Shown: in pieces, positions 1-37,824 of the stretch
Layout: every line of letters begins with the position of its first letter
Numbering within the stretch: position 1 is the stretch's first letter
NCBI GenBank assembly: GCA_965285935.1
Contig: OZ260662.1
Span: 17,980,001-18,044,000 of the forward strand
Direction of reading: 5' to 3'
DNA: 64,000 nucleotides
Source of the DNA: Ophelia neglecta
Lineage: Eukaryota
Notes under the pieces: generated by a model
The model's input: the letters and a program-made list of their open reading frames with translations, nothing else
What the model was told of the DNA's origin: nothing
Database searches by the model: none
Translations under genes and position numbers: made by a program

Positions 1-309
1 GGAGATCAACTCCAGAGCACTGTTTTTAAGCTGAATATCATTGAAACCAAGCGATGAAGCATAAGGGGTCTGCCTTCTTATCTAGACATATTGATAATTC
101 GCCGGGCTTGCTTTCATAGAGTTTGATTTGAACCAGTCAATTGCCACATTTGCTTTCTGCTCCCGAGTGTGGGCTACCATGTCCTGGCTATCCTCAACAA
201 CTGTGATGGCATTGTCATCAGCATAATTTGAGAGTCTAGAAGCTTCCATGGGGAGAAGTAGGTCATTCCTGAAGGAATTGAAAAGGTCTGGCCTGACTGA
301 GCTATTCTA
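1..309 (-). mobile_element. Decayed non-LTR retrotransposon (CR1/L2-like) reverse transcriptase fragment
   Basis: The minus strand translates SVRPDLFNSFRNDLLLPMEASRLSNYADDNAITV...AIDWFKSNSMKASPANYQ*, matching the LINE RT pattern GP.LF..F.NDL...YADD...WF..N.M..NP. YADD is at 214-225, followed by a stop. Confidence 0.85.
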
Positions 310-2209
310 CAAACTGCCCCTATCCCCCATGCTGCAGGGCAAAATATAAACCTAAGTGTAACATAAATAGGCTCTGATTGGATGGTAATCAGTGTATGTT
401 TAACATTTGTAGGTCCTGTAGAGCGAAATGGATCAGCTCAATTCTAATGAATAAAACATTTATTTAACTATGTGTCCAAGGGAATTGATTCATTAGCTTC
501 TATTAATTAACTCTATGAGGGCTTGTCCGGGGTCTATGGGTGCAAGAGTACAATAAGGTCAGGAAGCGTAGAAACACTGATTCCCCCGAAATAAGCCGAC
601 CAGTCGTTTTCTTGGGTGAAGGTCGCCACCTTGCGGAGAAAAGAGCAGGTCAGCGCATAACGAAATACAGAAATACATGCATACTCTATAGGTGGCACGA
701 TTTGTGGACAAACTCTTAATTCTAAATGTAGGTTTAAGTCCAGAGTCTCAACCTGGTCACAGATGGGAAATGTACTTAAAGCTATTGGCTCAAGCACAGA
801 TTGGTGACCTTTGAATTGATTTATGGCCTTCGAATATGTGAATTGAAAGTTAATTTACTGATTGGATTGAGAAAACCATTGTAACTCTTATGTGTAGACT
901 GCGATAGGTATTTGAGGTGCCACCTCAGTTAGTAAAACGCTTATCTCCCATTCATCATTTCTCTCACAGCATCCTGTCTTTTTTCTGATTGATCAGTGGT
1001 TTGTACTCAGTGGCTTGTACGGAATGTTTACTTTACGATAAGACCGCGGAATGATACAAAGCATATACCGATTTGTCACGTGACAATTTAAGCAGCCAAT
1101 CACAACATATAGAACGCGTGGGGTCCACAATTTACTTAAAGCATTGCCGACAAGGGGTTTGGCCTGGGGCCTGTAGCCCGATAAAAAGGAAGCTATATGA
1201 CAGTTCCCATCTTGATAAGTCTCCCCCCCCCCCCTTTCCATTGATTCTGGTAAAAATTCAACACCTTTTTGTTCGGGAAAACGCTAATTTACCTTTCTTA
1301 GAAAACAGTTTTTTTCCAAAAAAAAAACATGGACGTTTTCAACAGTAGCTCTTTTAAGGTGAAGAAAGGAAATGCTTAGTAATTCCGTTTGACAGAGTTA
1401 TTCGACCAGAGAAAATACACATTAACTGCTCAGGAAGTGCAGGCCCTGGGGTTGTATGCTCCCATGAAAAAAAATGGTGGCTAACTTCGCGCATCGTTTA
1501 TTCCCGTGAAGCAGGCTTATTCCGCGCACGGTAAATAATGGGCGAATTTACCCTACTTTAATCAATAGGTAAAGGTGATACTCCGAAGAGATCGACCCCC
1601 CCCCCCCCCATGTGGGAGGGAAGATCAACCACACACACACTTCCGTTGTTTACTGAAGTTCTTTGTGGGCACAAAGATGAACGGTCCCCTATTCTGGCCC
1701 ACTGCTACCCTGCAATCCCAGAGGTGTCCTCTTTAAGTTCACTCTGAGTGCATGCTGTGACCTGGTTCGACCACCATATTATACTGAAACCCAATCAGAT
1801 CCACTGAAGGCTAAGATAACGACTATCTTGATTAATGACGGGTCCCGTAGAAGGAGCACACCCCGCTGGTTCCAGTACGTAGCCCAATTGACCGGCCACT
1901 GGAGCAAATAATGTGTCATGCATATATTCATTTGAGGAGACAATACATTTTGAAGCCCCTCGAACACGAGAGAAGTTAATCGAGGAACTGGAGGGGGAGG
2001 CGAAGGTGGGATGGGGGTAGGGTAGGGAGGGCAGCGGGAGTGAGGCATTGTATCCGTCGGTTTATGCGGAATTCTGCCTTATTTTCGTTACAGAATTGTG
2101 TATTGAATTCAGCCCTCTGTCGGGGGCATAGACCCGAGTATCCCCCCCCCCCCCCCACACACACACACACACTTTGTATGAGGCTCCCAAAGCGCATTAG
2201 CTAACTTAA

Positions 2210-2612
2210 AGCCGACATTTCAGTTTGCATAATTTCAACTCATTTCTAGACGCATGCGCTCATTGTGGGCCGAATTCGAAAGAGATCCATAGAGATAAAA
2301 TACAGATATGGTGTGCCTGGTAGACAGCCGGCGTTTGACGAATAGCCAAATCATGCCGAGATGATAGACAGAGACGCTTTGCCGAGAAACTAAAGCATGC
2401 CCGCCTATAAGAGCCTGTGGATTATAGTAGCTCCCGGCAGGCCACTGTTCGCGTCGTCTGCTTGCGTCTACGATTAACGGGCAAAAGCGAGCTTTTCAAC
2501 AGGCAATTTGGTTCTTTGGCATATGAAGTTCTTTGATTTCGGATGAAACATTGGCTAAATAATCGGCGTTATGTGTGACCCTTTGAAAATTGAATAGCAG
2601 TGCAGGGTATCT
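2210..2612. mobile_element. Possible TTAA-flanked non-autonomous DNA transposon (Kolobok-like)
   Basis: A CpG-rich 403-bp block bracketed by TTAA|AG... and ...CT|TTAA (TTAA at 2206-2209 and 2613-2616). TIR identity beyond the termini is weak. Confidence 0.35.
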
Positions 2613-3225
2613 TTAAAAATAGGGTAAAATGTATATAATATACAGAGCAGATGGGACATATTGATTTATTGGGTCATGTCTGGTAAAGTAATCATATAGA
2701 CATACAACCTACTCGACAGGCTAGTTTTATTGGTGGGAAGAATACTGTAGCAGAAAGGACTTCGACAGATGGGGGTATCCTCCCAGAAAGTGATCCGCTA
2801 CTGAACTCAGTAGATATAGATATATATATATGGAGAGAGAGAGAAAGAACCAGACTTTAATTTAAAACATTCTAACAAATGAGCATTTCTTCGGCAAATA
2901 CATTGTAGCAAGTTGCCTCGAAACTCTGTCCAAATTTTACTTCACATGTTTAGTCTTAGTGTATTCAAACACCCATGATAAGTCAACAGCCGAAATAATT
3001 CTCCCTGCAATGAACATATTTTGCTACAATTCTCTTATCTAAACCCCGTCCCTCCTTCTAAAAGTGGAAAAATACCCCCCCCCCCCCCCAACACTCCCTT
3101 GCTGGTAGATAATAATGGACGTTCTCCTGTACATTGGCAGTTACACAGATGAATTGAAGATCCATGAACGCCCAGAATGAAAACTAAAATACAAACGAAT
3201 GAGCAATATAAAGTAAAATACAAAC

Positions 3226-3764
3226 CCATGAGCGGAATAGCCAAGGAAGTCCGCGGAATATTGTCGGCTATCATCAATAGAAAGACTGTGAATGCTAGTA
3301 GTACAGATATCCCAAGGGAAATCTTCTCACCCGCGTCCGGAGGTAATAAGAACCCGATCATGATCAGGACGCTGAGCATGAGACACGGCAGGACAATATT
3401 CATGATGTAGAATTTGTACCGTCGCTTTAGGTGAAGTGTGAAAATAACATGTGGGTATCCCTTGCCCGGGCAACATTCCAGAACGGTGATGTTCCAGTGT
3501 GCCGAGGTGGCATACACGTGCCATTCTCCATTTAAACTAAAGTCGTGGGTACTGATGGTATCACTGGCGTTGGTAATGTTCATTTTACTACTATAGTAGC
3601 TATAGGCCCCTATCAACAGAGGGCAGTGCTGAGCGTCGAACGGGAAGTATTTAATATCAATGTCACAGGTGGTTCGGAAAATACCGCCCGGCTCCCAGTG
3701 GAGAGACCCGTCGTAATTCAGCAGCACGCGGATACGGTCGAAGTCTGGGATCAGCTCATCGGCC
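3226..3764 (-). CDS. nAChR-family subunit, coding exon 5 (loops E/B/F/C, Cys-loop, M1, M2, M2-M3 linker)
   Basis: Acceptor ATTTCAG| and donor ATGG|GTTTGT, 539 nt. Contains the Cys-loop CDIDIKYFPFDAQHC (C-x13-C), vicinal CC (ECCPGKGY), M1 (FYIMNIVLPCLMLSVL) and M2 (GEKISLGISVLLAFTVFLLMIADNIP). The supplied ORF 3035-3775 overruns into intron at both ends. Confidence 0.96.
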
Positions 3765-3898
3765 CTGAAATACATTAAAATAATCAGTAGATAAATGCGG
3801 CAGTGTTAAGTTACCCGAAGTCACCTATCCAGTTACGTTTGTGCTGCGTCTAGAATTCTAGCACGTTTTACATAATCAAATATATTCAGCGAAAACTA

Positions 3899-4430
3899 TC
3901 TATACTTATAAAATAACGAGGTCCGAAACCTTTGTTTTTGTATAGAAAAATGAGGCTTTGCGTCTCACGACCCGCAATATTTATGACATTGTGTGACAGC
4001 TTACAGCTCATACTTGTGCAATTTTGTTTCTGAGATTCATCGGGACGCTACAAAGGCAAAAATGAAGTAAAAAGATAGCTTGTGATGGGAGGCGAACCAG
4101 CCATCTTTTTCCTGCGAAAAAACTGTGCCATAGCTTACAAGCCTAGCGCCTAAACCACTAACCCATAGAGGCCGGTAGCGATCCACAATATACTTATAAA
4201 AGTTGGTCACATTTCCTACTGAAATGTTATTGATGTTTATATGTAGGCCTGTTCTGTTTTGTACAATTACCCGTTAGATACTTGTTGGAGTAGCCAGGGA
4301 ATGTATACCATACTATTGCATATATGAAAGCAAACGCGATACCGTAATAATGATCGTGCTCATGTAGGGTTTGCAGTAGTACAAGCAATAAACGATATGA
4401 TATTTAAAGGTGATAGAACCTGAGACCTAG
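3899..4430 (+). mobile_element. Non-autonomous Helitron-like element carrying an antisense tRNA-like/SINE head
   Basis: Inserted between A(3898) and T(4431). 5' end TCTATACTTATAAAAT, 3' end CTAG preceded by a short hairpin AGGT-gataga-ACCT (4408-4421). The minus strand has A-box-like TGGGTTAGTGG (~4155-4165) and B-box-like GGTTCGCCTCCC (4087-4098). Confidence 0.55.
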
Positions 4431-4959
4431 TGGGTACGATGGGGTGGTAGAGAGGAGGAGGGTGGTTTAATTTTAAAGGTTTCTAATTTTATAGGCGTAT
4501 TAATTTTCTATTATCCAGAAAGGGCAAGGCTGGGGTAGGTGGGGGTGGGGATGCTGACAGAGCAAGTTAGGGGAGTGTCGGGAACAAACAACGATGACTG
4601 CGGATGGTTGGGGGAGGAAAGAGGAGGAGGGTACATAGACGGGTATTTTGTTAATTATAGATGCGATGGGTTGTTGAGTGGCTATATTGAGGTGTAGGCA
4701 TCGAGTCGTTGCATGTGAAAAAAACCTGCTGTTAGGAGACCGGGGGGGGGGGGGGGGGTCAAAGTGAGCAAAGCGAACGGGTCTTTCCAGTTGTATAAAT
4801 TCTTTCCAGCCTCTAAATAAACTATAGCATTTGCGTATGAACATGCACCTTTTCTAGCACGTATTTATTGTCAAACCATTTAAATACCCCCCCCCCTTGT
4901 ATTCCCATATATAGTGTATGACAATAATTATTCAATAAAGAAATCTCCAGTCTACAGAC

Positions 4960-5069
4960 CCGTTCATCACAGCCAGCTCCGGTAGCCACAGCTTATCCGC
5001 CTTTATAATGATGTCAGTGAGGTTGCCGAATTTTTCCGGGTCCCACATGAGGCGGTCGTCTGTCCACTC
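4960..5069 (-). CDS. nAChR-family subunit, coding exon 4 (EWTDDRLMWDPEKFGNLTDIIIKADKLWLPELAVMNG; loop A)
   Basis: Acceptor TTTTCAG| and donor GG|GTCTGT. 110 nt, the size of the equivalent nAChR exon, with W-x-D-x-x-L-x-W and W-x-P-[DE] motifs. Phase 2 joins exon 5 (GG+G = Gly). Confidence 0.95.
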
Positions 5070-6806
5070 CTGAAAAGGCCAAACAATGAATAAAACGGTT
5101 GTATATAATGTTATCATAAAACAGCCATGATGGTGTCCTGGTGAGCTAAGCCAATAAAATTGGGTTTGGTACATGGTTAGTCGATAAATGGATATAAACT
5201 GGTATAGCATATAGGCTTGTATGCATAAAAAACGTTTTAAAGCCGTTCAAATGAGCCGAGGCATGCCTGTTCATTTAGAATAGGATCGGTCCACTCATGG
5301 GGAAAGGGGTGGAGCTGGCCCCATCCACACCCTACAAGTGCGAGGTCCCCCATTTCCGAAAACTGGTCTTTCTCCATGCTTAAGGGGCCCTTGTCCACTT
5401 CGACCACCACCATGTAAAAACTCTGACAAGAGGTCAAATCAAGCGGGGGAACAGACCGTTCGACTGAAGTTGCCGATTCCAAGCGTGTTCTGCTTGAACA
5501 TTCACTCAAGTATCAAAGTTTAAAAGTATTTACAAAGGATATTGAATATGTGATATACAATAATATTTTTTCTTCAGTGCCCCCGATATGCTACACCTCA
5601 CAAAGCCATCGTCTACTAACTCCATGGTTTGTAGATCGAGGATATTTTCGAGAGTATTTTTCTTCCAGGAGACAAATGAGCGTTCAGGGCGAAATGTGTA
5701 ATCTATATCAAAATCCTTGGAGGATACATACAGTATATGTATACATGTCAATGCACAATACGGCATTACCGGATGTGTCCGCACACGGAACCTCGGTTGA
5801 TGTGTTGAATAAACGTTTGAATAAACGAGATATATTCAGGGCCCACTATAACACGGTAGAAATAAAATGTTGATATCATCAGGCCGTTTCGCCAGTGTAA
5901 TTCATGCCTTGTTCAGACCTCTGTGGTCTTTTTAATGTATTTTTTTGCCAATTCATATTCTTGCTGAATTCAATAGGGCTTAATATCGCACAATTTTTTG
6001 GGAAATCTTGCAGTTGTATGGATCTATCATAAACCTCAGGCGTATAGACTATATTGGGCACAGGGGTGAGAGAGGAATGGGGTTTGGGGCGGGATTTAGG
6101 CGGTGTGCGGTTGGAGGGGGGGGGGGGTTGTCAGGAACAGGGCACGCCCCAACCCGTCTCCCCGAATTTCTTCTGAGAGCATTGAATATGCGAGGTCGGT
6201 GTCCCTATCTCTATCTCTCCCTTAGCCCCCACCCTCTCCTAGATTTATAGTTTCACCACTTTTCTTCAAATAGTGAGCATTCTAAATCCATTTTACCCAA
6301 AGAGCTAAAAATTAGAGATTTCGCTTTCTGGAATGTTCCGTTGTGAGGGCATCTTCCCTGGAAACTTTTGCAACAATGCAGGAAATGTTCATCTTATTAT
6401 TTTAGGTTATTTTTGCATCAAAAAATGCACCCACGCTCTTAGAATATAAGAAGTTTTTCCTGCGAAAAAACAGTGCGAACTACGTATGGATAAATTTTAT
6501 ATATAATGGTTCTGAATCGCTAACCTTTCCACGTCTAATGTACCTTGATCCCGTCTTACACTAGCAAATCTATAGCCTATAAAACGTGAATTCAAATGGT
6601 TTGGAATCAAGCTTAGCATTGGTCTTGTTAGCACCGAAAGTAATTGTGAAATCAGACCCATGCATTACGCCGACATTAACGTCAATTATATAACCCTCCA
6701 TTGATCAAACAGCTGGCGAGCTACGAACATCCGTCTGAAGCTTGTTCCTTATTTACTGTTGATTTTGTGCCTGAGAAGAGACTTGCCCAAGTGCCTTGGC
6801 TCTAAT

Positions 6807-6950
6807 CAGTGGCGGATTCAGGGCTCCCCTACCCCCCCCCCCCCACCCCATTTGCCAAAAGGTAAGCCTGGACCAGGGCCTATTTCTGGACCCACGCAAG
6901 GTGGTTTCAGAGTGTTGGTAAGGAAGACAATATAGACATTTGCAACGGGT
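6807..6950 (+). mobile_element. Truncated 5' half of the same CAGTGGCGGAT MITE family (second copy at 10395-10498)
   Basis: CAGTGGCGGATTCAGGG terminus plus internal CCAGGGCCTATTTCTGG..CACGCAAGGTGGTTTCAGAG.GTTGGTAA..GACAAT..AGACATTTGC shared with 11347-11575. Confidence 0.75.
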
Positions 6951-7944
6951 CTGATAATAGAGGTGATCTTTAATGCAGGTTTTACTTTATAGGACGAATA
7001 AAGGGCTCGAGAAATTTTCCTGCACTTTTAGCAGTATTGAGATATCTTGCTTCGCTACGTAAGTGGATAAGATGTTGGGCTTTAAGTCATAAATTTCACG
7101 AAAACGACCTGGATATCGTTAACCAGCTCACAGCGCCCGGAGCCGTATTAATACTGTAAGGTTCCTGATAGTCACGTGACAGTCAGTGAGCTTGATAATA
7201 TTGTAACAGTAAGGCATGTACATGTGATGCCTCGTGTTTGTGATACCCCTGTATATATTCATAACAGGATGGATCATGCAGTACCACCTATAACACCCAG
7301 TTAGCGAAAATATATTTTTTCGTTTTTCTTGGCGTACATATAAGAGACAACAAAATTGTCCACACAAAAAATGAACAGCGATCGAGCATACTGTCTTTCC
7401 TCGGCCGGAAGGCTAAATTAAAAGACGACCATTTAGCAGGATGACTAAGACATGTAGATATTCTGAAACCTATTCAAGGTTAGTGACAGGCATTCTTGAC
7501 ACATTCCAACCAGATAACTCTCAATTCTTTTTCAGCTTTCACAAATAATTCGACAGATGTCCGACAACAAGCCCAATAGTTTATTTTTACCTGCTATTTT
7601 AATCCTTCACCGAGCAAACTCACTCCCCTATTATCGTTGCTCTTTTATTTCAACCCTTTTCGAAGAGTAAAGGTGTTAGTTGAATTGCCCAAGTCAACAA
7701 ACACCTATGAATTTCAAATAAGAATTTGAAATTGTGGATTTGGAATTCCGTTTAAGTTAAAGTTGTCCTCTATGACCAAGTCTAAAAATGTGAAATAAAT
7801 TAATCCGGCCTATATTTCAATATATATATATGTATACTACTATGAGCTCTGGCTGCCTTAAAAACACAATAAACACTGTGTTTAACTCTTACAGTGTTTT
7901 TAACAGTGCTACTGAACCGATCTTTTTTAGCGACCGAGAAATAG

Positions 7945-8035
7945 AACAATGGTTGAGTCGGCTAGTTGAGTTTGGTGCATGGCGGTACTACAAATGATGT
8001 GGGATCGAGTCCCAGCCAAGTCAACAAACACCATT
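7945..8035 (+). mobile_element. tRNA-derived SINE head remnant (duplicate at ~11602-11692)
   Basis: A-box-like TGGTTGAGTCGG (7950-7961) and B-box-like GGGATCGAGTCCC (8001-8013) at tRNA-like spacing. No intact cloverleaf. Confidence 0.45.
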
Positions 8036-9775
8036 GAATATATATATATATTCAAATCCTATTTTACCTACCGTGCATGTATTAGACGGTTTTCTCGGTT
8101 AATCTAATTAATTAGGTCCACTGGGTGTTTCATAGTTACATTATTCATTAGCCTACCCGTCTTTATTCATGCTATAAAGTCCTATATAACCATTTATCCG
8201 TTTTCTTTCCTTAAGGGAGTGAGGTCTTCTTATCCACGTAGGCTCATATACGTATAATCTGGTACAATGGTGCCCGACCATATAGGGCAACTGAGAATTC
8301 CAATTACGGGGAGTGCTTTGGGGCCTCACCATTAAACTGCTTTTTAAGTTCTTACTATAACATTTTTACCTATATGAAAGCGGCCTTCATATAATCAAGA
8401 GTCAAGGTTAAAGGATACCGTACGTAAGACTAGTGTCCTGTTAACCCGCCAGGTCTCATGAATTAATGATAAGTGTAAAGATGATTGAAAAGCCTGCGAT
8501 CTTCCATAGCAGTTCCAGTAAGACCCGCCACGCGACCCACGCTCGAAAAACATTCATGTTATGGACTGGCGGGACTTGCGTTTTTTCAAGTAATCTGTCG
8601 CTCTTGTGCTCTATAGCTTTTCCACTTGTCAATTTGCTCCATGGTTACAAAAACAATCTAATGCTTTTAGAGTCTATACTCTCTGTGGCCTATGCAGAGA
8701 GATGCCAAACCGTTTTTTATTTATCTCAATGTTCAAGAAAACCTGACGGCTAGAAAATTCATTTGTCTTCCTGTGGATGCTTTGGCTTAGATTCTGCGCA
8801 ACATATGCCATTTTACTGGTGGTTTTGGGGCATGTCGACAGACCAGGATTAGCCTTACGGAGAAGAGGGTGGTATTGACTAGAGCCAAGTATATTTCAAA
8901 TGTCGTTTCAATGCTTATACCAATGGGGGTAGTTAGGAGGTTCCCATGCAGTCCCCAGTTTTAAATATAGGCACATTGTAAAACATTTTAAAATCCAGAT
9001 TTTTCATATCAGGGAATACGTTTTTTGATAAATTTAAAATGAATCCCAAGTCACGGGAAAAGGAAATGAATTCCAGCTCATAGTAAATGAAAATACTTGA
9101 TCCCGAAGAACGGACAAATGTCAAATCCCGACTCAAGAATAGTCTTAAAATCTAGGAAAACGGTCAGTGAAAAGGTCGGTTTTAACTCATTTCAACCTCA
9201 CCTACACCACCCCAATACCCCAGACACTTTCTGGGAATTAACACCCCTTCCGCATCCTTCCTTTTAATACCGTCATCCCTTCACAAGAATCTGACCGCCA
9301 CTGCAGACGACAGGGCAATTTTGCTGCTACTGACATGAGCATCAATTTGAGTCACTTTTGGATGCTATGCGCAAAGTACAGAAGAAAGTTTCCCTGTCCA
9401 AACGTAGGATAATTTTACATATCCGGCCCTATTTCCTGATGCGGCAGAATACAGTGACTTAGAGTTTAGTGTCCATTTAAGACTATGGGAATTCTTACTT
9501 TGTAGTTGAGGGAGGGGACAACGTACACAAAAGTACACTAAATCCCTTCCCCCTCCCCCCTCCCCCGGCTGCTCCTCGCCACATTTGGAAATTTATGAGA
9601 CAAAAAAGTGTTTTTTAACTTCCGGAAATAAAAGATTTTTTGGGGGGGCCAAGGTCAGTAAAAAAAAACGATGTTCTTTCGCAACAACAATAAATTGTCG
9701 CGAAAAACTACATAACATAATGTATTAATATAAAATTTGAAGAAAAAAGTTGTTTGATAATAGTATATATAGTAA

Positions 9776-12700
9776 TGAGAGCATTGAATATGCGAGGTCG
9801 GTGTCCCTATCTCTATCTCTCTCTCCCCCCCCCCCCCCACCCTCTCCTAGATTTATAGTTTCACCACTTTTCTTCAAATAGTGAGCATTCTAAATCCATT
9901 TTACCCAAAGAGCTAAACATTAGAGATTTCGCTTTCTGGAATTTTCCGTTATGAGGACATCTTCCCTGGAAACTTTTGCAACAATGCAGGAAATGTTCAT
10001 CTTATTATTTAGGTTATTTTTGCATCAACAAATGCACCCACGCTCTTAGAATATAAGAATTTTTTCCTGCGAAAAGAGTAAATTTTATAGTTAATGGTTC
10101 TGTATCGCTAACCTTTCCACGTCTCCTGTACCTTGATCCCGTCTTACACTAGGAATTCTATAGCCTATAAAACGTGAATTCAAATGGTTTGGAATCAAGC
10201 TGAGCATTGGTCTTGTTAGCACCGAAAGTAATTGTGAAATCAGACCCATGCATTACGCCGACATTAACGTCAATTATATAACCCTCCATTGATCAAACAG
10301 CTGGCGAGCTACGAACATCCGTCTGAAGCTTGTTTCTTATTTACTGTTGATTTTCTGCCTGAGAAGAGACTTGGCCAAGTGCCTTGGCTCTAATCAGTGG
10401 CGGATTCAGGGCTCCCCCACCCCCACCCCATTTGCCAAAAGGTGGGCCTGGACCAGGGCCTATTTCAGGAACCACGCAAGGTGGTTTCAGAGTGTTGGGC
10501 TTTAAGTCATAAATTTCACGAAAACGACCTGGATATCGGCGGGACATTGTTAACCAGCACACAGCGCCCGGAGCCGTATTAATACTGTAAGATTCCTAAT
10601 AGTCACGTGACAGTCAGTGAGCTTGATAATATTGTAACAGTAAGGCATGTACATGTGATGCCTTGTGTTTGTGAAACCCCTGTATATATTCATGACAGGA
10701 TGGATCATGCAGTACCACATACAACACCGAAAATATATTTTTTCGTTTTTCTTGGCGTACATATAAGAGACAACAAAATTGTCCATTCACACAACAAATG
10801 AACAGCGATCGAGCATACTGTCTTTCCTCGGCCGGAAGGCTAAATTAAAAGACGACCATTTAGCAGGATGACTAAGACAGGTAGGTATTCTGAAACATAA
10901 TCAAGGTTAGTGACAGGCATTCTTGACACATTCCAACCAGATAACTCTCAATTCTTTTTCAGCTTTCACAAATAATTCGACAGATGTCCGACAACAAGCC
11001 AAATAGTTTACTTTTACCTGCTTTTTTAATCCTTCGCCGAGCAAACTCACTCCCCTATTATCGTTGCTCTTTTATTTCAACCTTTTCGAAGAGTAAAGGT
11101 GTTAGTTGAATTGCCCAACTCAACAAACACCTATGAATTTCCAATAAAAATTTGAAATTGTGGATTTGGAATTCCGATTAAGTTAAAGTTGTCCTCTATG
11201 ACCAAATCTAAAAATGTGAAATAAATTAATCCGGCCTACTTTTCAATATATATATGTATACTACTATGAGCTCTGGGTGCCTCAAAAACACAATAAACAC
11301 TGTGTCCAACGCTAACAGTGATTATAACAGTGCTATTTAACCTCCCCTGGGGCGGATTTAGGGAGGGGGCCGAGGGCCCGCCCTCCCCCCTTTTGCTAAA
11401 AAGTGGGCCTGATCCAGGGCCTATTTCTGGGCTCACGCAAGGTGGTTTCAGAGGGTTGGTAACGGGGACAATCCAGACATTTGCCAACTGTAGACATATC
11501 TGTTGCCAACAAATCATAGGTCAACCCGGGGAAATATGCCCCCCCCCCCTTCCTGAAATCCTGGATCCGCCACTGCTCCCTTTCTGGCGACCGAGAAATA
11601 GAACAATGGTTGAGTTGGATCGTTGGGCATGGTGCATGGCGGTACTACAAATGATGTGGGATCGAGTCCCAGCCAAGTCAACAAACACCATTGAATTTAT
11701 ATATATTCAAATCCTATTTAACCTACCGTACATGTATTAGACGGTTTTCTCGGTTAATCAAATTAATTAAGTCCACTGGGTGTTTCATGTTTACATTATT
11801 CATTAGCCTATCCGTGTTTATTCATGCTATATAGTCCTATATAACCATTTCTTAGTTTTCTTTCCTTAAGGGAGTGAGGTCTTCTTATCCACGTGGGCTC
11901 ATATCCGTATAATCTGGTACAATGGTGCCCGACCATATAGGGCAACTGAGAATTCCAATTACGGGGAGTGCTTTGGGGCCTCACCATTAAACTGCTTTTT
12001 AAGTTCTTACTATAACATTTACCTACATGTATATATGAAAGCGGCCTTCATATAATCACGAGTCAAGGTTAAAGGATGCCGTACGTAAGACTAGTGTCCT
12101 GTTAACCCGCCAGGTCTCATGAATTAATGATAAGTGTAAAGATGATTGAAAAGCCTGCGACCTTCCATAACAGTTCCAGTAAGATCCGCCACGCGACCCA
12201 CGCTCGAAAAACATTCATGTTATGGACTGGTGGGACTTGCGTTTTTTCAAGTAATCTGTCGCTCTTGTGCTCTATAGCTTTTCCACTTGTCAATTTGCTC
12301 CATGGTTACAAAAACAATCTAATGCTTTTAGAGTCTATACTCTCTGTGGCCTATGCAGAGAGATGCCAAACCGTTTTTTATTTATCTCAATGTTCAAGAA
12401 AACCTGACGGCTAGAAAATTCATTTATCTTCCTGTGGATGCTTTGGCTTAGATTCTGCGCAACATATGCCATTTTACTGGTGGTTTGGGGGCATGTCGAC
12501 AGACCAGGATTAGCCTTACGGAGAAGGGGATGGTATTGACAAGAGCCAAGTATATTTCAAATGTCGTTTCAATGCTTATACCAATGGGGGTAGTTAGGAG
12601 GTTCCCATGCAGTCCCCAGTTTTAAATATAGGCACATTGTAAAACATTTTAAAATCCAGATTTTTCATATCAGGGAATACGTTTTTTGATAAATTTAAAA

Positions 12701-13467
12701 TGAATCCCAAGTCACGGGAAAAGGAAATGAATTCCAGCTCATAGTAAATGAAAATACTTGATCCCGAAGAACGGACAAATGTCAAATCCCGACTCAAGAA
12801 AAGTCTTAAAATCTAGGAAAACGGTCAGTGAAAAGGTCGGTTTTAACTTATTGCAACCTCACCTACAACACTTCAAGTCCCCAGACACTTTCTGGGAATT
12901 AACACCCTTTCCGCATCCTTCCTTTTAATACCGTCATCCCTTCACAAGAATCTGACCGCCACTGCAGACGACAGGGCAATTTTGCTGCTACTGACATGTG
13001 GCCACATGCGGCTGTATCGTTAGCTAATGGAAAAGCATCAATTTGAGTCACTTTTGGATGCTATGCGCAAAGTACAGAAGAAAGTTTCCCTGTCCAAACG
13101 TAGGATAATTTTACATATCCGGCCCTATTTCCTGATGCGTCAGAATACAGTGACCTAGAGTTTAGTGTCCATTTAAGACTATGAAAATTCTTACTTTGTA
13201 GTGGAGGGAGAGGACAACGTACACAAAAGTACACTTAATCCCTTCCCCCCTCCCCCCTCCCCACTCCCCGGCTGCTCCTCGCCACATTTGGAGGTTTATG
13301 AGACAAAAAAGTGTTTTTCAACTTCCGGAAATAAAAGATTTTTTTGGGGGGCCAAGGTCAGTAAAAAAACGATGTTCTTTCGCAACAACAATAAATTGTC
13401 GCGAAAAACTACATAACATAATGTATTAAGATAAAATTTGAAGAAAAAAGTTGTTTGATAATAGTAT
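9776..13467 (+). repeat. Segmental tandem duplication, copy 2 (~3.7 kb)
   Basis: Same start and end sequences as copy 1, separated from it by 9 bp (ATATAGTAA). Explains the paired ORFs 8466/12127, 8933/12594 and 7128/10550. Confidence 0.95.
11347..11575 (+). mobile_element. MITE with CAGTGGCGGAT-type termini
   Basis: Left end CTGGGGCGGATTTAGGG, right end TCCTGGATCCGCCACTG (reverse complement CAGTGGCGGATCCAGGA). CTCCC is repeated on both flanks (11342-11346, 11576-11580). Absent from the equivalent site in duplication copy 1. Confidence 0.8.
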
Positions 13468-13905
13468 TCAACAACCCCCCCCCCTCCCCCCCCTCCTAGG
13501 GGACCCAAGAAAAAATATAATCCTTGTATACCCTGAAATTTTCACTGTGATTTTTATCACCGTTAATGTTGAAACAAAGATCCTATATGAACTATGAAAC
13601 GGGAAGTTTCCATTTCCGCCGTAAACTATGAGTAGATCCATGGCCTGAATACATCTGCACACAATATTATTTAAGTTTGTATGAGCCATGAATAAGTCAC
13701 TCCTATTGACCTATATGACCTCCCCCCCCCCACAGCCCTGAGGCCTGACCCCCCCCCCCTCGCCAGTGGAAAAAGCTGCTCCTCGTGCATGACTAAATTA
13801 GACCAGAGAAGTTTATAAATTAAGGTTACCCCCTCCCCCTCTCCCCGTGGAAATCTGCTCCCCGTGCCTTGCTAAATCTGACCAAAGAAGTATATTCATT
13901 AAAAG

Positions 13906-14131
13906 GGCTATTGATTACATGCGGAAGTGCGGAAGCTATGCTGACGCGGAGGTCGTTGGAATTTCAGAATGACAGGAAACAAAAAAGCGTCAGCAAGGCT
14001 AGGGTTAAGGCTGAGGGTTAATTTCAGGGTTAGGAAAAGGGTAATGGACAAATTTAATAGGTATAGTGCTCTGCTCTAATTTCGGGCTATACCTCGGCAA
14101 GGCTCCGTGCTTCCGCTTTTAAACAAAATCC
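13906..14131. mobile_element. MITE with ~40-bp imperfect TIRs, 8-10 bp TSD and internal TTAGGG-like repeats
   Basis: Left GGCTATTGATTACATGCGGAAGTGCGGAAGCTATGCTGACG vs right reverse complement GGATTTTGTTTAAAAGCGGAAGCACGGAGCCTTGCCGAGG. Direct repeat CATTAAAAGG at 13897-13906 and 14131-14140. Confidence 0.75.
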
Positions 14132-14148
14132 ATTAAAAGGTTACTCAC

Positions 14149-14193
14149 CGCAATCACCAGTCCGGTAGTTGTCAGCACCTGGCTTCTCTCGTC
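14149..14193 (-). CDS. nAChR-family subunit, coding exon 3 (DERSQVLTTTGLVIA; loop D)
   Basis: Acceptor CTTCAG| and donor GCG|GTGAGT. 45 nt, phase 0/0, equivalent to the conserved 45-nt DEKNQVLTTNIWLQM exon of nAChR genes. Confidence 0.95.
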
Positions 14194-16911: not shown

Positions 16912-17060
16912 CAGCCCGTGAATTCGGAGTAGAACAAAGTCTATCTCCACCCGGACAGGTTCCGATGTGTCCATAACGGCACGTGCTACTGGGTCGTAGT
17001 CATGGAATAAATACGATAGGAGGCGCTCTTCATGGGTAGCGTTCCTGAACAGGTACTTGG
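16912..17060 (-). CDS. nAChR-family subunit, coding exon 2 (KYLFRNATHEERLLSYLFHDYDPVARAVMDTSEPVRVEIDFVLLRIHGL)
   Basis: Acceptor TGTTTGCAG| and donor CTG|GTAAGT, 149 nt. Encodes the N-terminal helix (EERLL..LF..Y) and beta1 typical of nAChRs. Confidence 0.95.
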
Positions 17061-37757: not shown

Positions 37758-37824
37758 CTTTTCCCCAGACGAGCGTCAGACAGGACAGGAGGAATATGTC
37801 TGTGATGTACGGTCCAAGGTGCAT
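37758..37824 (-). CDS. nAChR-family Cys-loop channel alpha-type subunit, coding exon 1 (signal peptide MHLGPYITDIFLLSCLTLVWGK)
   Basis: ATG at 37824-37822 in a good context (AGGATG). 22 codons + 1 nt with a hydrophobic core and a VWG signal-peptidase-like site, ending in the strong donor AAG|GTAAGG. Phase 1 matches the next exon (G+CC = Ala). An acceptor TCTTTCCAG| at 37872 implies the exon starts at 37871 with 47 nt of 5'UTR. Confidence 0.8.

Follow-up and report, generated by a model that had tools for sequence, protein, structure and literature searches.

A conserved annelid subunit of the nicotinic receptor family in Ophelia neglecta with a replaced aromatic box, a candidate receptor for a ligand other than acetylcholine

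The cephalopod chemotactile receptors (CRs), such as CRT1 and CRB1, are cation channels derived from nicotinic acetylcholine receptors (nAChRs) that are insensitive to acetylcholine (ACh) and no longer carry the cholinergic signature residues (PMC11526382, PMC10338036). They form an expanded family in which pocket sites are under diversifying selection (PMC11526382). Among annelids, Alpo4 of Alvinella pompejana is an orphan nAChR-like receptor, with a structure solved by cryo-electron microscopy, for which wide screening found no ligand; it keeps F103, W159, Y199, Y205, and W65, lacks the vicinal cysteine pair (CC), and has a pore constriction at the 16' Met (PMC10338036). The nematode DEG-3/ACR-23 group consists of nAChR-family channels retuned to choline or betaine and is a nematode-specific clade. 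Here, an nAChR-family subunit gene is described from a 64,000-nucleotide (nt) stretch of the Ophelia neglecta genome (assembly GCA_965285935.1, contig OZ260662.1, positions 17,980,001 to 18,044,000), the whole of which is referred to below as the window and supplies the coordinates unless otherwise indicated. The gene is a member, type A, of a trio of annelid orthogroups (A, B, and C), and its pocket pattern is the opposite of that of Alpo4, in which the aromatics are kept and the CC is lost. Lophotrochozoan nAChR expansions with many noncanonical pockets are already known, as are nAChR-derived orphans with a rebuilt pocket; the conserved annelid A/B/C trio, and its type A member with a Trp-to-Tyr change, appear to be undescribed.

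The gene lies on the minus strand, and its exons, numbered 2 to 6 as recognized, were read directly from the DNA. All searches, alignments, and trees were made exon by exon, mostly with exon 5 (179 amino acids [aa]), rather than with a joined coding sequence. The five-residue aromatic box of the classical ACh-gated nAChRs reads Leu, Met, Tyr, Leu, Tyr in this gene. The W55 column in loop D holds CTG (Leu, 14160-14158), the Y93 column in loop A holds ATG (Met, 4967-4965), and the W149 column in loop B holds TAT (Tyr, 3602..3604), a change specific to type A. At the loop C tip (3455..3481), CTG encodes Leu at the Y188/190 column (3481-3479), followed by TGT TGC for the vicinal CC (3475-3470) and TAC for Tyr (3457-3455). 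Thus, four of the five box residues are replaced, three of them by aliphatics, and the second loop C Tyr is the only one unchanged. A preliminary description made from the sequence had assigned these codons and the four replacements; its codon coordinates proved exact, and the replacements were confirmed by HMMER and by multiple alignment. The CC that marks an alpha-type nAChR subunit is present and aligns with that of alpha-7.

The solved alpha-7 and alpha-3 chains were the best structural matches to exon 5 (E of ∼1e-41) among the best 60 of 108, at an identity of only 38 to 45%; Alpo4 was absent from those 60. In these alignments, GAYSY stands opposite GSWSY, and TVLECC…GYP stands opposite RFYECC…PYP. 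The multiple alignment used Branchiostoma alpha-7-like, Aplysia ACR-16-like, Sciurus alpha-3, Oryzias alpha-4, and Patella alpha-10 sequences as canonical references. Across the canonical columns R-P, Q, W55, Y93, W149, Y151, Y188, C, C, and Y195, the gene reads R-A, R, L, M, Y, Y, L, C, C, and Y. On the principal face, the aromatics that remain are the loop B Tyr, Tyr151, and the loop C Tyr. The coupling elements are conserved, namely, DERSQ in beta1-beta2, FPFD in the Cys-loop, RR before M1, and PRTSLAIPL in the M2-M3 linker. The Cys-loop itself (3623..3667) is a C-x13-C motif, C-DIDIKYFPFDAQH-C. The M2 helix (3263..3328) carries Glu at -1' (GEK), Leu at 9', and Asp at 20' and has no Pro insertion, and PPDAGEKISLGISVLLAFTVFLLMIAD matches alpha-7 GEKISLGITVLL; the pore is predicted to be of the cation-channel type. 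The alignments thus uphold the earlier view that the aromatic box is gone from both faces of the site and that the gating and pore motifs are kept. Compared with alpha-7, ACR-16, and alpha-9/10-like subunits, the Cys-loop, the CC, the -1' Glu, and the 9' Leu are common, whereas the four box residues are replaced and the gene belongs to a separate clade. Contact with the DEG-3/ACR-23 group was limited to a weak match of ACR-23 to exon 4.

Loop B Trp is retained in almost all relatives within the same genome. The 762-Mb genome contains more than 150 exon-5-like nAChR matches, an expansion of the lophotrochozoan type. In a comparison of this gene, paralog B, and 40 other loci, 42 exon-5 sequences in all, loop B Trp is kept in 40; a single distant paralog has Leu instead, and this gene has Tyr. 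The pocket substitutions are beyond chance for the nAChR family. Types A, B, and C are each represented by one gene, all on C2 (17.98, 24.81, and 15.04 Mb, respectively). Paralog B (C2:24.81 Mb) is 70 to 71% identical to this gene over exon 5 and carries the set L/M/W/L at the W55, Y93, W149, and Y188 columns; paralog C (C2:15.04 Mb) carries L/I/W/L, and its exon 5 is divided by introns. Type A has one full copy in the genome rather than a lineage-specific expansion with a variable pocket.

Relatives were collected by searching a representative library with exon 5, followed by two word searches with the full-length relatives obtained. Among the relatives recovered, the A/B/C family consists of annelid sequences only. 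Type A (GAYSY, L/M/Y/L) includes Capitella CAPTEDRAFT_104243 and Helobdella HELRODRAFT_70180, both uncharacterized "hypothetical proteins" in NCBI, together with two metagenome contigs, L053 (exons 3, 4, 5, and 6) and L054 (exons 3, 4, and 5), and more than 10 exon fragments. Type B (GAWAYY, L/M/W/L) includes Helobdella 94890, Paralvinella, Dimorphilus 2509, and P0004, the last a full-length 520-aa protein from a 2-kb Logan contig that is apparently a transcript. Type C (GAWAYK, L/I/W/L) includes Dimorphilus 6450 and Capitella 123138, and an Owenia gene (V/I/W/F) falls just outside the trio. Types A and B thus co-occur in Helobdella, and types A and C co-occur in Capitella. Exon 5 is 82% identical to that of the Capitella ortholog and 78% identical to that of the Helobdella ortholog, the fragments are at 73 to 91% identity, and the exon 3 peptide matches those of L053 and L054 at 100 and 93% identity, respectively.

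The Capitella and Helobdella type A proteins agree with this gene in RA, the Arg of LLRI, Met93, GAYSY, both the Leu and the Tyr of loop C, and the pore. Loop B Tyr is present in every type A fragment that spans the site, Met occupies the Y93 column in all type A and type B sequences, and the residue directly before the loop C Tyr is Gly in type A and Arg in types B and C. The preliminary description had proposed checking whether orthologs share the L/M/Y/L set with dN/dS below 1. The set is shared by Helobdella, in which loop D is as in this gene, by L053 and L054, and by the more than 10 fragments; Capitella, in contrast, combines M/Y/L with a different loop D (TTTAGYLQ), which may reflect a gene-model or alternative-exon issue.

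A tree of the exon-5 region (IQ-TREE, 179 columns) places this gene among the annelid orthologs, with a short terminal branch (0.087). Monophyly and signature agree on its type A membership; the Capitella gene model departs from the signature in loop D. Support is 100/99 for type A, 100/97 for A+B+C, and 95/86 for A+B+C with the Owenia gene. A wider clade (100/98), which also includes Patella, Lottia, Haliotis, Lingula, and Ridgeia sequences, stands apart from the alpha-7/alpha-10/ACR-16-like and heteromeric groups. Of the phylogeny proposed earlier, the part with alpha-7, alpha-10, and lophotrochozoan sequences was thus realized and put the gene in an annelid clade; the cephalopod CRs, like the nematode DEG-3 group, lie outside the set of sequences in the tree. 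Down the tree, the box erodes stepwise: the molluscan members lack Y93 only, the annelid (Ridgeia-like) sister group reads L/I/W/F/F, A/B/C reads L/M(I)/W/L/Y, and W149 becomes Tyr in type A alone. As reconstructed from these sequences, the ancestor of A/B/C is shown to have already had Leu for W55, Met or Ile for Y93, and Leu for Y188, and by the same reconstruction the trio lost the cholinergic aromatic box before annelid diversification. Capitella, Helobdella, Dimorphilus, and Owenia are among the taxa sampled in a published tree of 649 lophotrochozoan nAChRs, which does not single out the A/B/C family (PMC10338036); because of this sampling, A/B/C members were probably among its sequences. 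A literature search found no paper mentioning the ortholog locus tags and no case in which such an annelid nAChR-like channel had been deorphanized.

The loop E motif HWEPGG, in which His and Glu face the pocket by homology, was considered as an A/B/C-specific ligand contact. The same motif is present in the sister paralogs and in molluscan kin, so it is no A/B/C-specific innovation, and the candidate was rejected in that form.

To examine selection, this gene was compared with L053 and L054 over exons 3 to 5. The proportion of synonymous differences (pS) is 0.89 to 0.91 in these comparisons (full range given for exons 3 to 5, 0.84 to 0.91), which is saturated, versus a proportion of nonsynonymous differences (pN) of 0.10 to 0.13. 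Because the synonymous sites are saturated, Nei-Gojobori dS is incomputable, and the dN/dS ratio can be given only as an upper bound, well below ∼0.15. The residues kept at the pocket are encoded by different synonymous codons among the orthologs: Leu55 by CTG, CTT, or CTC; Tyr149 by TAT or TAC; Leu188 by CTG, CTC, TTA, or TTG; and Glu119 by GAG or GAA. The preservation of pocket residues through this turnover shows constraint on the replaced pocket itself. The saturated synonymous sites, the low pN, and the short terminal branch together argue that a decaying gene can be excluded. The gene was earlier judged to be maintained and functional-looking rather than decaying, and the shared pocket of the orthologs, the low pN against saturated pS, and the codon turnover bear this out.

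The exon structure is that of an intact subunit gene. Exon 2 (16912..17060) encodes the N-terminal helix and beta1 (…EERLLSYLFHDYDPVARAVMDTSEPVRVEIDFVLLRIHGL), with RA for the usual RP, and LLRI; both features, reported in the preliminary description, are real and lie outside the range given there. The exon 2 donor GT is at 16911-16910, and its acceptor (cag|cc) is tentative. Exon 3 (14149..14193, 45 nt) covers beta2 and loop D and reads DERSQVLTTTGLVIA, with Ile at the Q57 column in addition to the Leu at W55. Exon 4 (4960..5069, 110 nt) encodes EWTDDRL...WLPELAVMN, ending in loop A with its Met. The sizes of exons 3 and 4 are presumably those of the corresponding vertebrate CHRNA7 exons, a correspondence to be taken only as a lead. 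Exon 5 (3226..3764, 539 nt) contains loop E (HWEPGG), the Cys-loop, loop B (IGAYSYY), and loop C (TVLECCPGKGYPH), and in its 3' part M1, M2, and the start of the M2-M3 linker, with a phase-1 donor GT at 3225-3224. No M3/M4 exon was found in the 3.2 kb of the window that is left past exon 5. Intron 5 (1..3225 in the window) continues 9.6 kb past the window start to the last exon, which was located in 20 kb fetched beyond that point. This exon 6 (G000:C2:17970416..17969833, equal to L003:2416..1833, minus strand, 584 nt) encodes M3, a cytoplasmic loop of ∼115 aa followed by the MA/M4 region, and the stop codon, to which the frame is open. Its acceptor has a long polypyrimidine tract (tttcag|TG), and the first two bases of the exon complete the phase-1 codon of exon 5 as Val. 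Exon 6 is type-A-like, since ADYSKEWHEMAHVLDRLFFW and LLYPKY match the Capitella, Helobdella, and L053 orthologs, and no other exon-5-like match was found between exons 5 and 6 on this strand.

All five recognized exons are open, and all splice sites are AG/GT with matching phases, the exon 2 acceptor being tentative. The Pfam domain Neur_chan_LBD is tiled in order by exon 2 (positions 1 to 37), exon 4 (56 to 91), and exon 5 (102 to 216), and Neur_chan_memb is tiled by exon 5 (1 to 57) and exon 6 (61 to 232). The scores are 78.7 and 69.2 bits for exon 5, 35.4 for exon 4, and 51.7 for exon 6; exon 2 reaches 18.7 bits, under the cut-off when searched alone. With both domains and the C-x13-C loop containing FPFD, the product is a pentameric ligand-gated (Cys-loop) channel subunit. 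The intact frame, Cys-loop, CC, and loop C Tyr of the preliminary description are thus confirmed, and the M3-M4 exon beyond the window is likewise open and in phase.

The gene product is an intact pentameric cation channel subunit maintained by selection, type A of an annelid-specific nAChR-derived subfamily, and its binding site has probably been retuned away from ACh. The A/B/C ancestor had replaced W55, Y93, and Y188, type A then exchanged the loop B Trp for Tyr, and the pocket residues have been held fixed since. The resulting orthosteric site would lack classical five-aromatic cation-pi binding of ACh and would be tuned elsewhere, most likely to a conserved endogenous small molecule. Candidate ligand contacts are the loop B Tyr, Tyr151, the loop C Tyr, and the loop E His and Glu, and the type A subunit may act alone or with the Trp-retaining types B and C. 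A conserved endogenous ligand fits better than an environmental tastant because the orthogroup is single-copy and deeply conserved and its pocket is invariant. A broader proposal, that A/B/C is an ancient annelid-wide fast receptor system for a non-ACh transmitter or metabolite in which type A, with its loop B Tyr and loop C Gly, is a dedicated partner subunit, can be put forward only tentatively.

Several observations weigh against a retuned type A site. In other Cys-loop receptors, a loop B Tyr can itself take part in cation-pi binding, as does Tyr198 of GABA-rho, so amine ligands, including choline-like ones, may still bind. The vicinal CC is lost in the type A protein of Helobdella (P0161) and in P0173, P0012, P0014, P0060, and P0121, although the Leu and Tyr on either side persist. 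Constraint on the alpha signature is thus absent from the type A orthogroup, and the losses suggest that the critical face may not be the principal one. A heuristic scan of 23 kb upstream (ATG, hydrophobic core, phase-1 donor) did not establish exon 1. No RNA run with the exon was found, the runs containing it being three of DNA type from one sample that is probably the source of the assembly, and no spliced type A transcript was present in the protein collections searched. Finally, noncanonical principal sites are common among lophotrochozoan alpha subunits: in the oyster, only 13 of 33 alpha subunits keep all principal-site residues, and the other 20 are noncanonical (PMC6896357).

The strongest competitor, which nonetheless appears rather unlikely, is that type A is an accessory or structural subunit without an agonist site of its own, which joins B and/or C and tunes assembly, gating, or conductance. 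Vertebrate alpha5, beta3, and muscle beta1 are accessory subunits of this kind. The repeated CC loss in type A would fit such a role, given that the CC is kept in all type C and all type B sequences examined except P0156. The single A, B, and C genes on C2 and the pairing of A with B in Helobdella and with C in Capitella point in the same direction, as do the best matches of exon 4, which are the non-alpha muscle delta and beta3 chains. Because several type A orthologs lack the CC and types B and C keep loop B Trp in the same genomes, an accessory or partner role is conceivable. However, Leu55, Met93, Tyr149, Tyr151, Leu188, and Tyr195 are invariant in almost all orthologs, the Capitella loop D excepted, a level of conservation above that usual for a structural face. 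In addition, W55 is replaced in B and C as well, so the trio has no canonical complementary face.

It is improbable, although less so than the two explanations considered last, that the channel is still cholinergic, responding with altered affinity to ACh, choline, or a related quaternary amine through its remaining aromatics. Three aromatics do remain on the principal face, the channel has the pore and the coupling elements of a cation-selective nAChR, and loop B Tyr or Phe supports cation-pi contacts in other Cys-loop receptors. Against this, four of five box positions are replaced, three by aliphatic residues, with the complementary Trp among them, and the loop B Trp that type A has lost is otherwise near-invariant in the genome (40 of 42 sequences).

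An environmental chemoreceptor for hydrophobic external compounds, comparable to the cephalopod CRs, is a distinctly poorer fit. In its favor, Leu, Met, and Leu have made the pocket more aliphatic, and the ACh-insensitive, nAChR-derived CRs are a precedent (PMC11526382, PMC10338036). However, the CRs are a cephalopod-specific expansion, multiplied within their lineage and with diversifying selection in the pocket (PMC11526382), whereas the annelid orthogroup of this gene is single-copy and has a pocket frozen from Capitella to leeches. The nearest relatives of type A found are annelid, followed by those of Patella, Lottia, Haliotis, and Lingula; they are not cephalopod, which implies an origin independent of the CRs. 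The chemosensory analogy drawn in the preliminary description is weakened accordingly. A pseudogene or decaying duplicate, which might be suspected from the missing exon 1 and RNA runs, is highly improbable given five open exons with canonical splice sites and matching phases, strong purifying selection, and the short terminal branch.

The retuned-site proposal bears on a practical problem. Lophotrochozoan genomes contain hundreds of nicotinic-type genes without known roles, mostly young, fast-evolving duplicates that are hard to prioritize. The A/B/C family, three orthogroups in which loss of the box is old and the new pocket is under strong constraint, offers unusually good targets for deorphanization because the genes are few, tractable species have orthologs (Capitella, Helobdella, and possibly Platynereis), and the members of the trio differ cleanly from one another (loop B Trp versus Tyr and loop C Arg versus Gly). 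Success in this would give the nAChR branch an additional ligand class that is independent of the cephalopod CRs. If the trio does form a non-ACh receptor system, its deorphanization would reveal a new ionotropic signaling pathway across a whole phylum.

Additional features were noted in the gene and its relatives. The sole exon 1 candidate is weak and is not relied on here; it lies at 37758..37824 (minus strand), 20 kb upstream of exon 2, and reads MHLGPYITDIFLLSCLTLVWGK with a phase-1 GTAAGG donor. Unlike this gene, in which each exon is present in a single copy and exon 5 is unsplit, the ENA metagenome contig L053 (regions 2679-2999 and 5912-8680) contains two tandem copies of exon 4, with peptides 86 and 81% identical to that of this gene, and two versions of the small exon for loop B, one with GAYAYY and one with GAYSYY. 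The duplicates have the look of alternative exons used in a mutually exclusive manner. Most of the 9-kb intron 3 is occupied by a tandem repeat (6195..13262) of two copies of a ∼3.6-kb unit, 91 to 98% identical, with a start-to-start spacing of 3427 to 3696 nt; no exon copies were found inside the units. In intron 5, a short open reading frame (82..249, minus strand) with a YADD-type motif (…SNYADDNAITVVED…) is suggestive of a reverse-transcriptase remnant and has no Pfam match.

Elsewhere in the genome, a relic of the start of exon 5 (31 aa, 84 to 93 nt) is found at C12:45801535-45801627, with 87% nucleotide and 77% aa identity. Four sister paralogs, L014-L016 and L020 (G000; C7:60629724-60630254, C7:60667390-60667923, C5:44889109-44889639, and C7:63189670-63190125), together with the Ridgeia-like P0169 and P0274, have Gln where this gene has Glu at -1', and their M1-M2 loop lacks two residues (P--AQKVQIG); their ion selectivity may be altered. 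Closer to the gene, nAChR-like exon matches, ∼40% identical over M1-M2, are located on the opposite (plus) strand at C2:17923612-17923884 and C2:17860192-17860476, 60 and 120 kb away.

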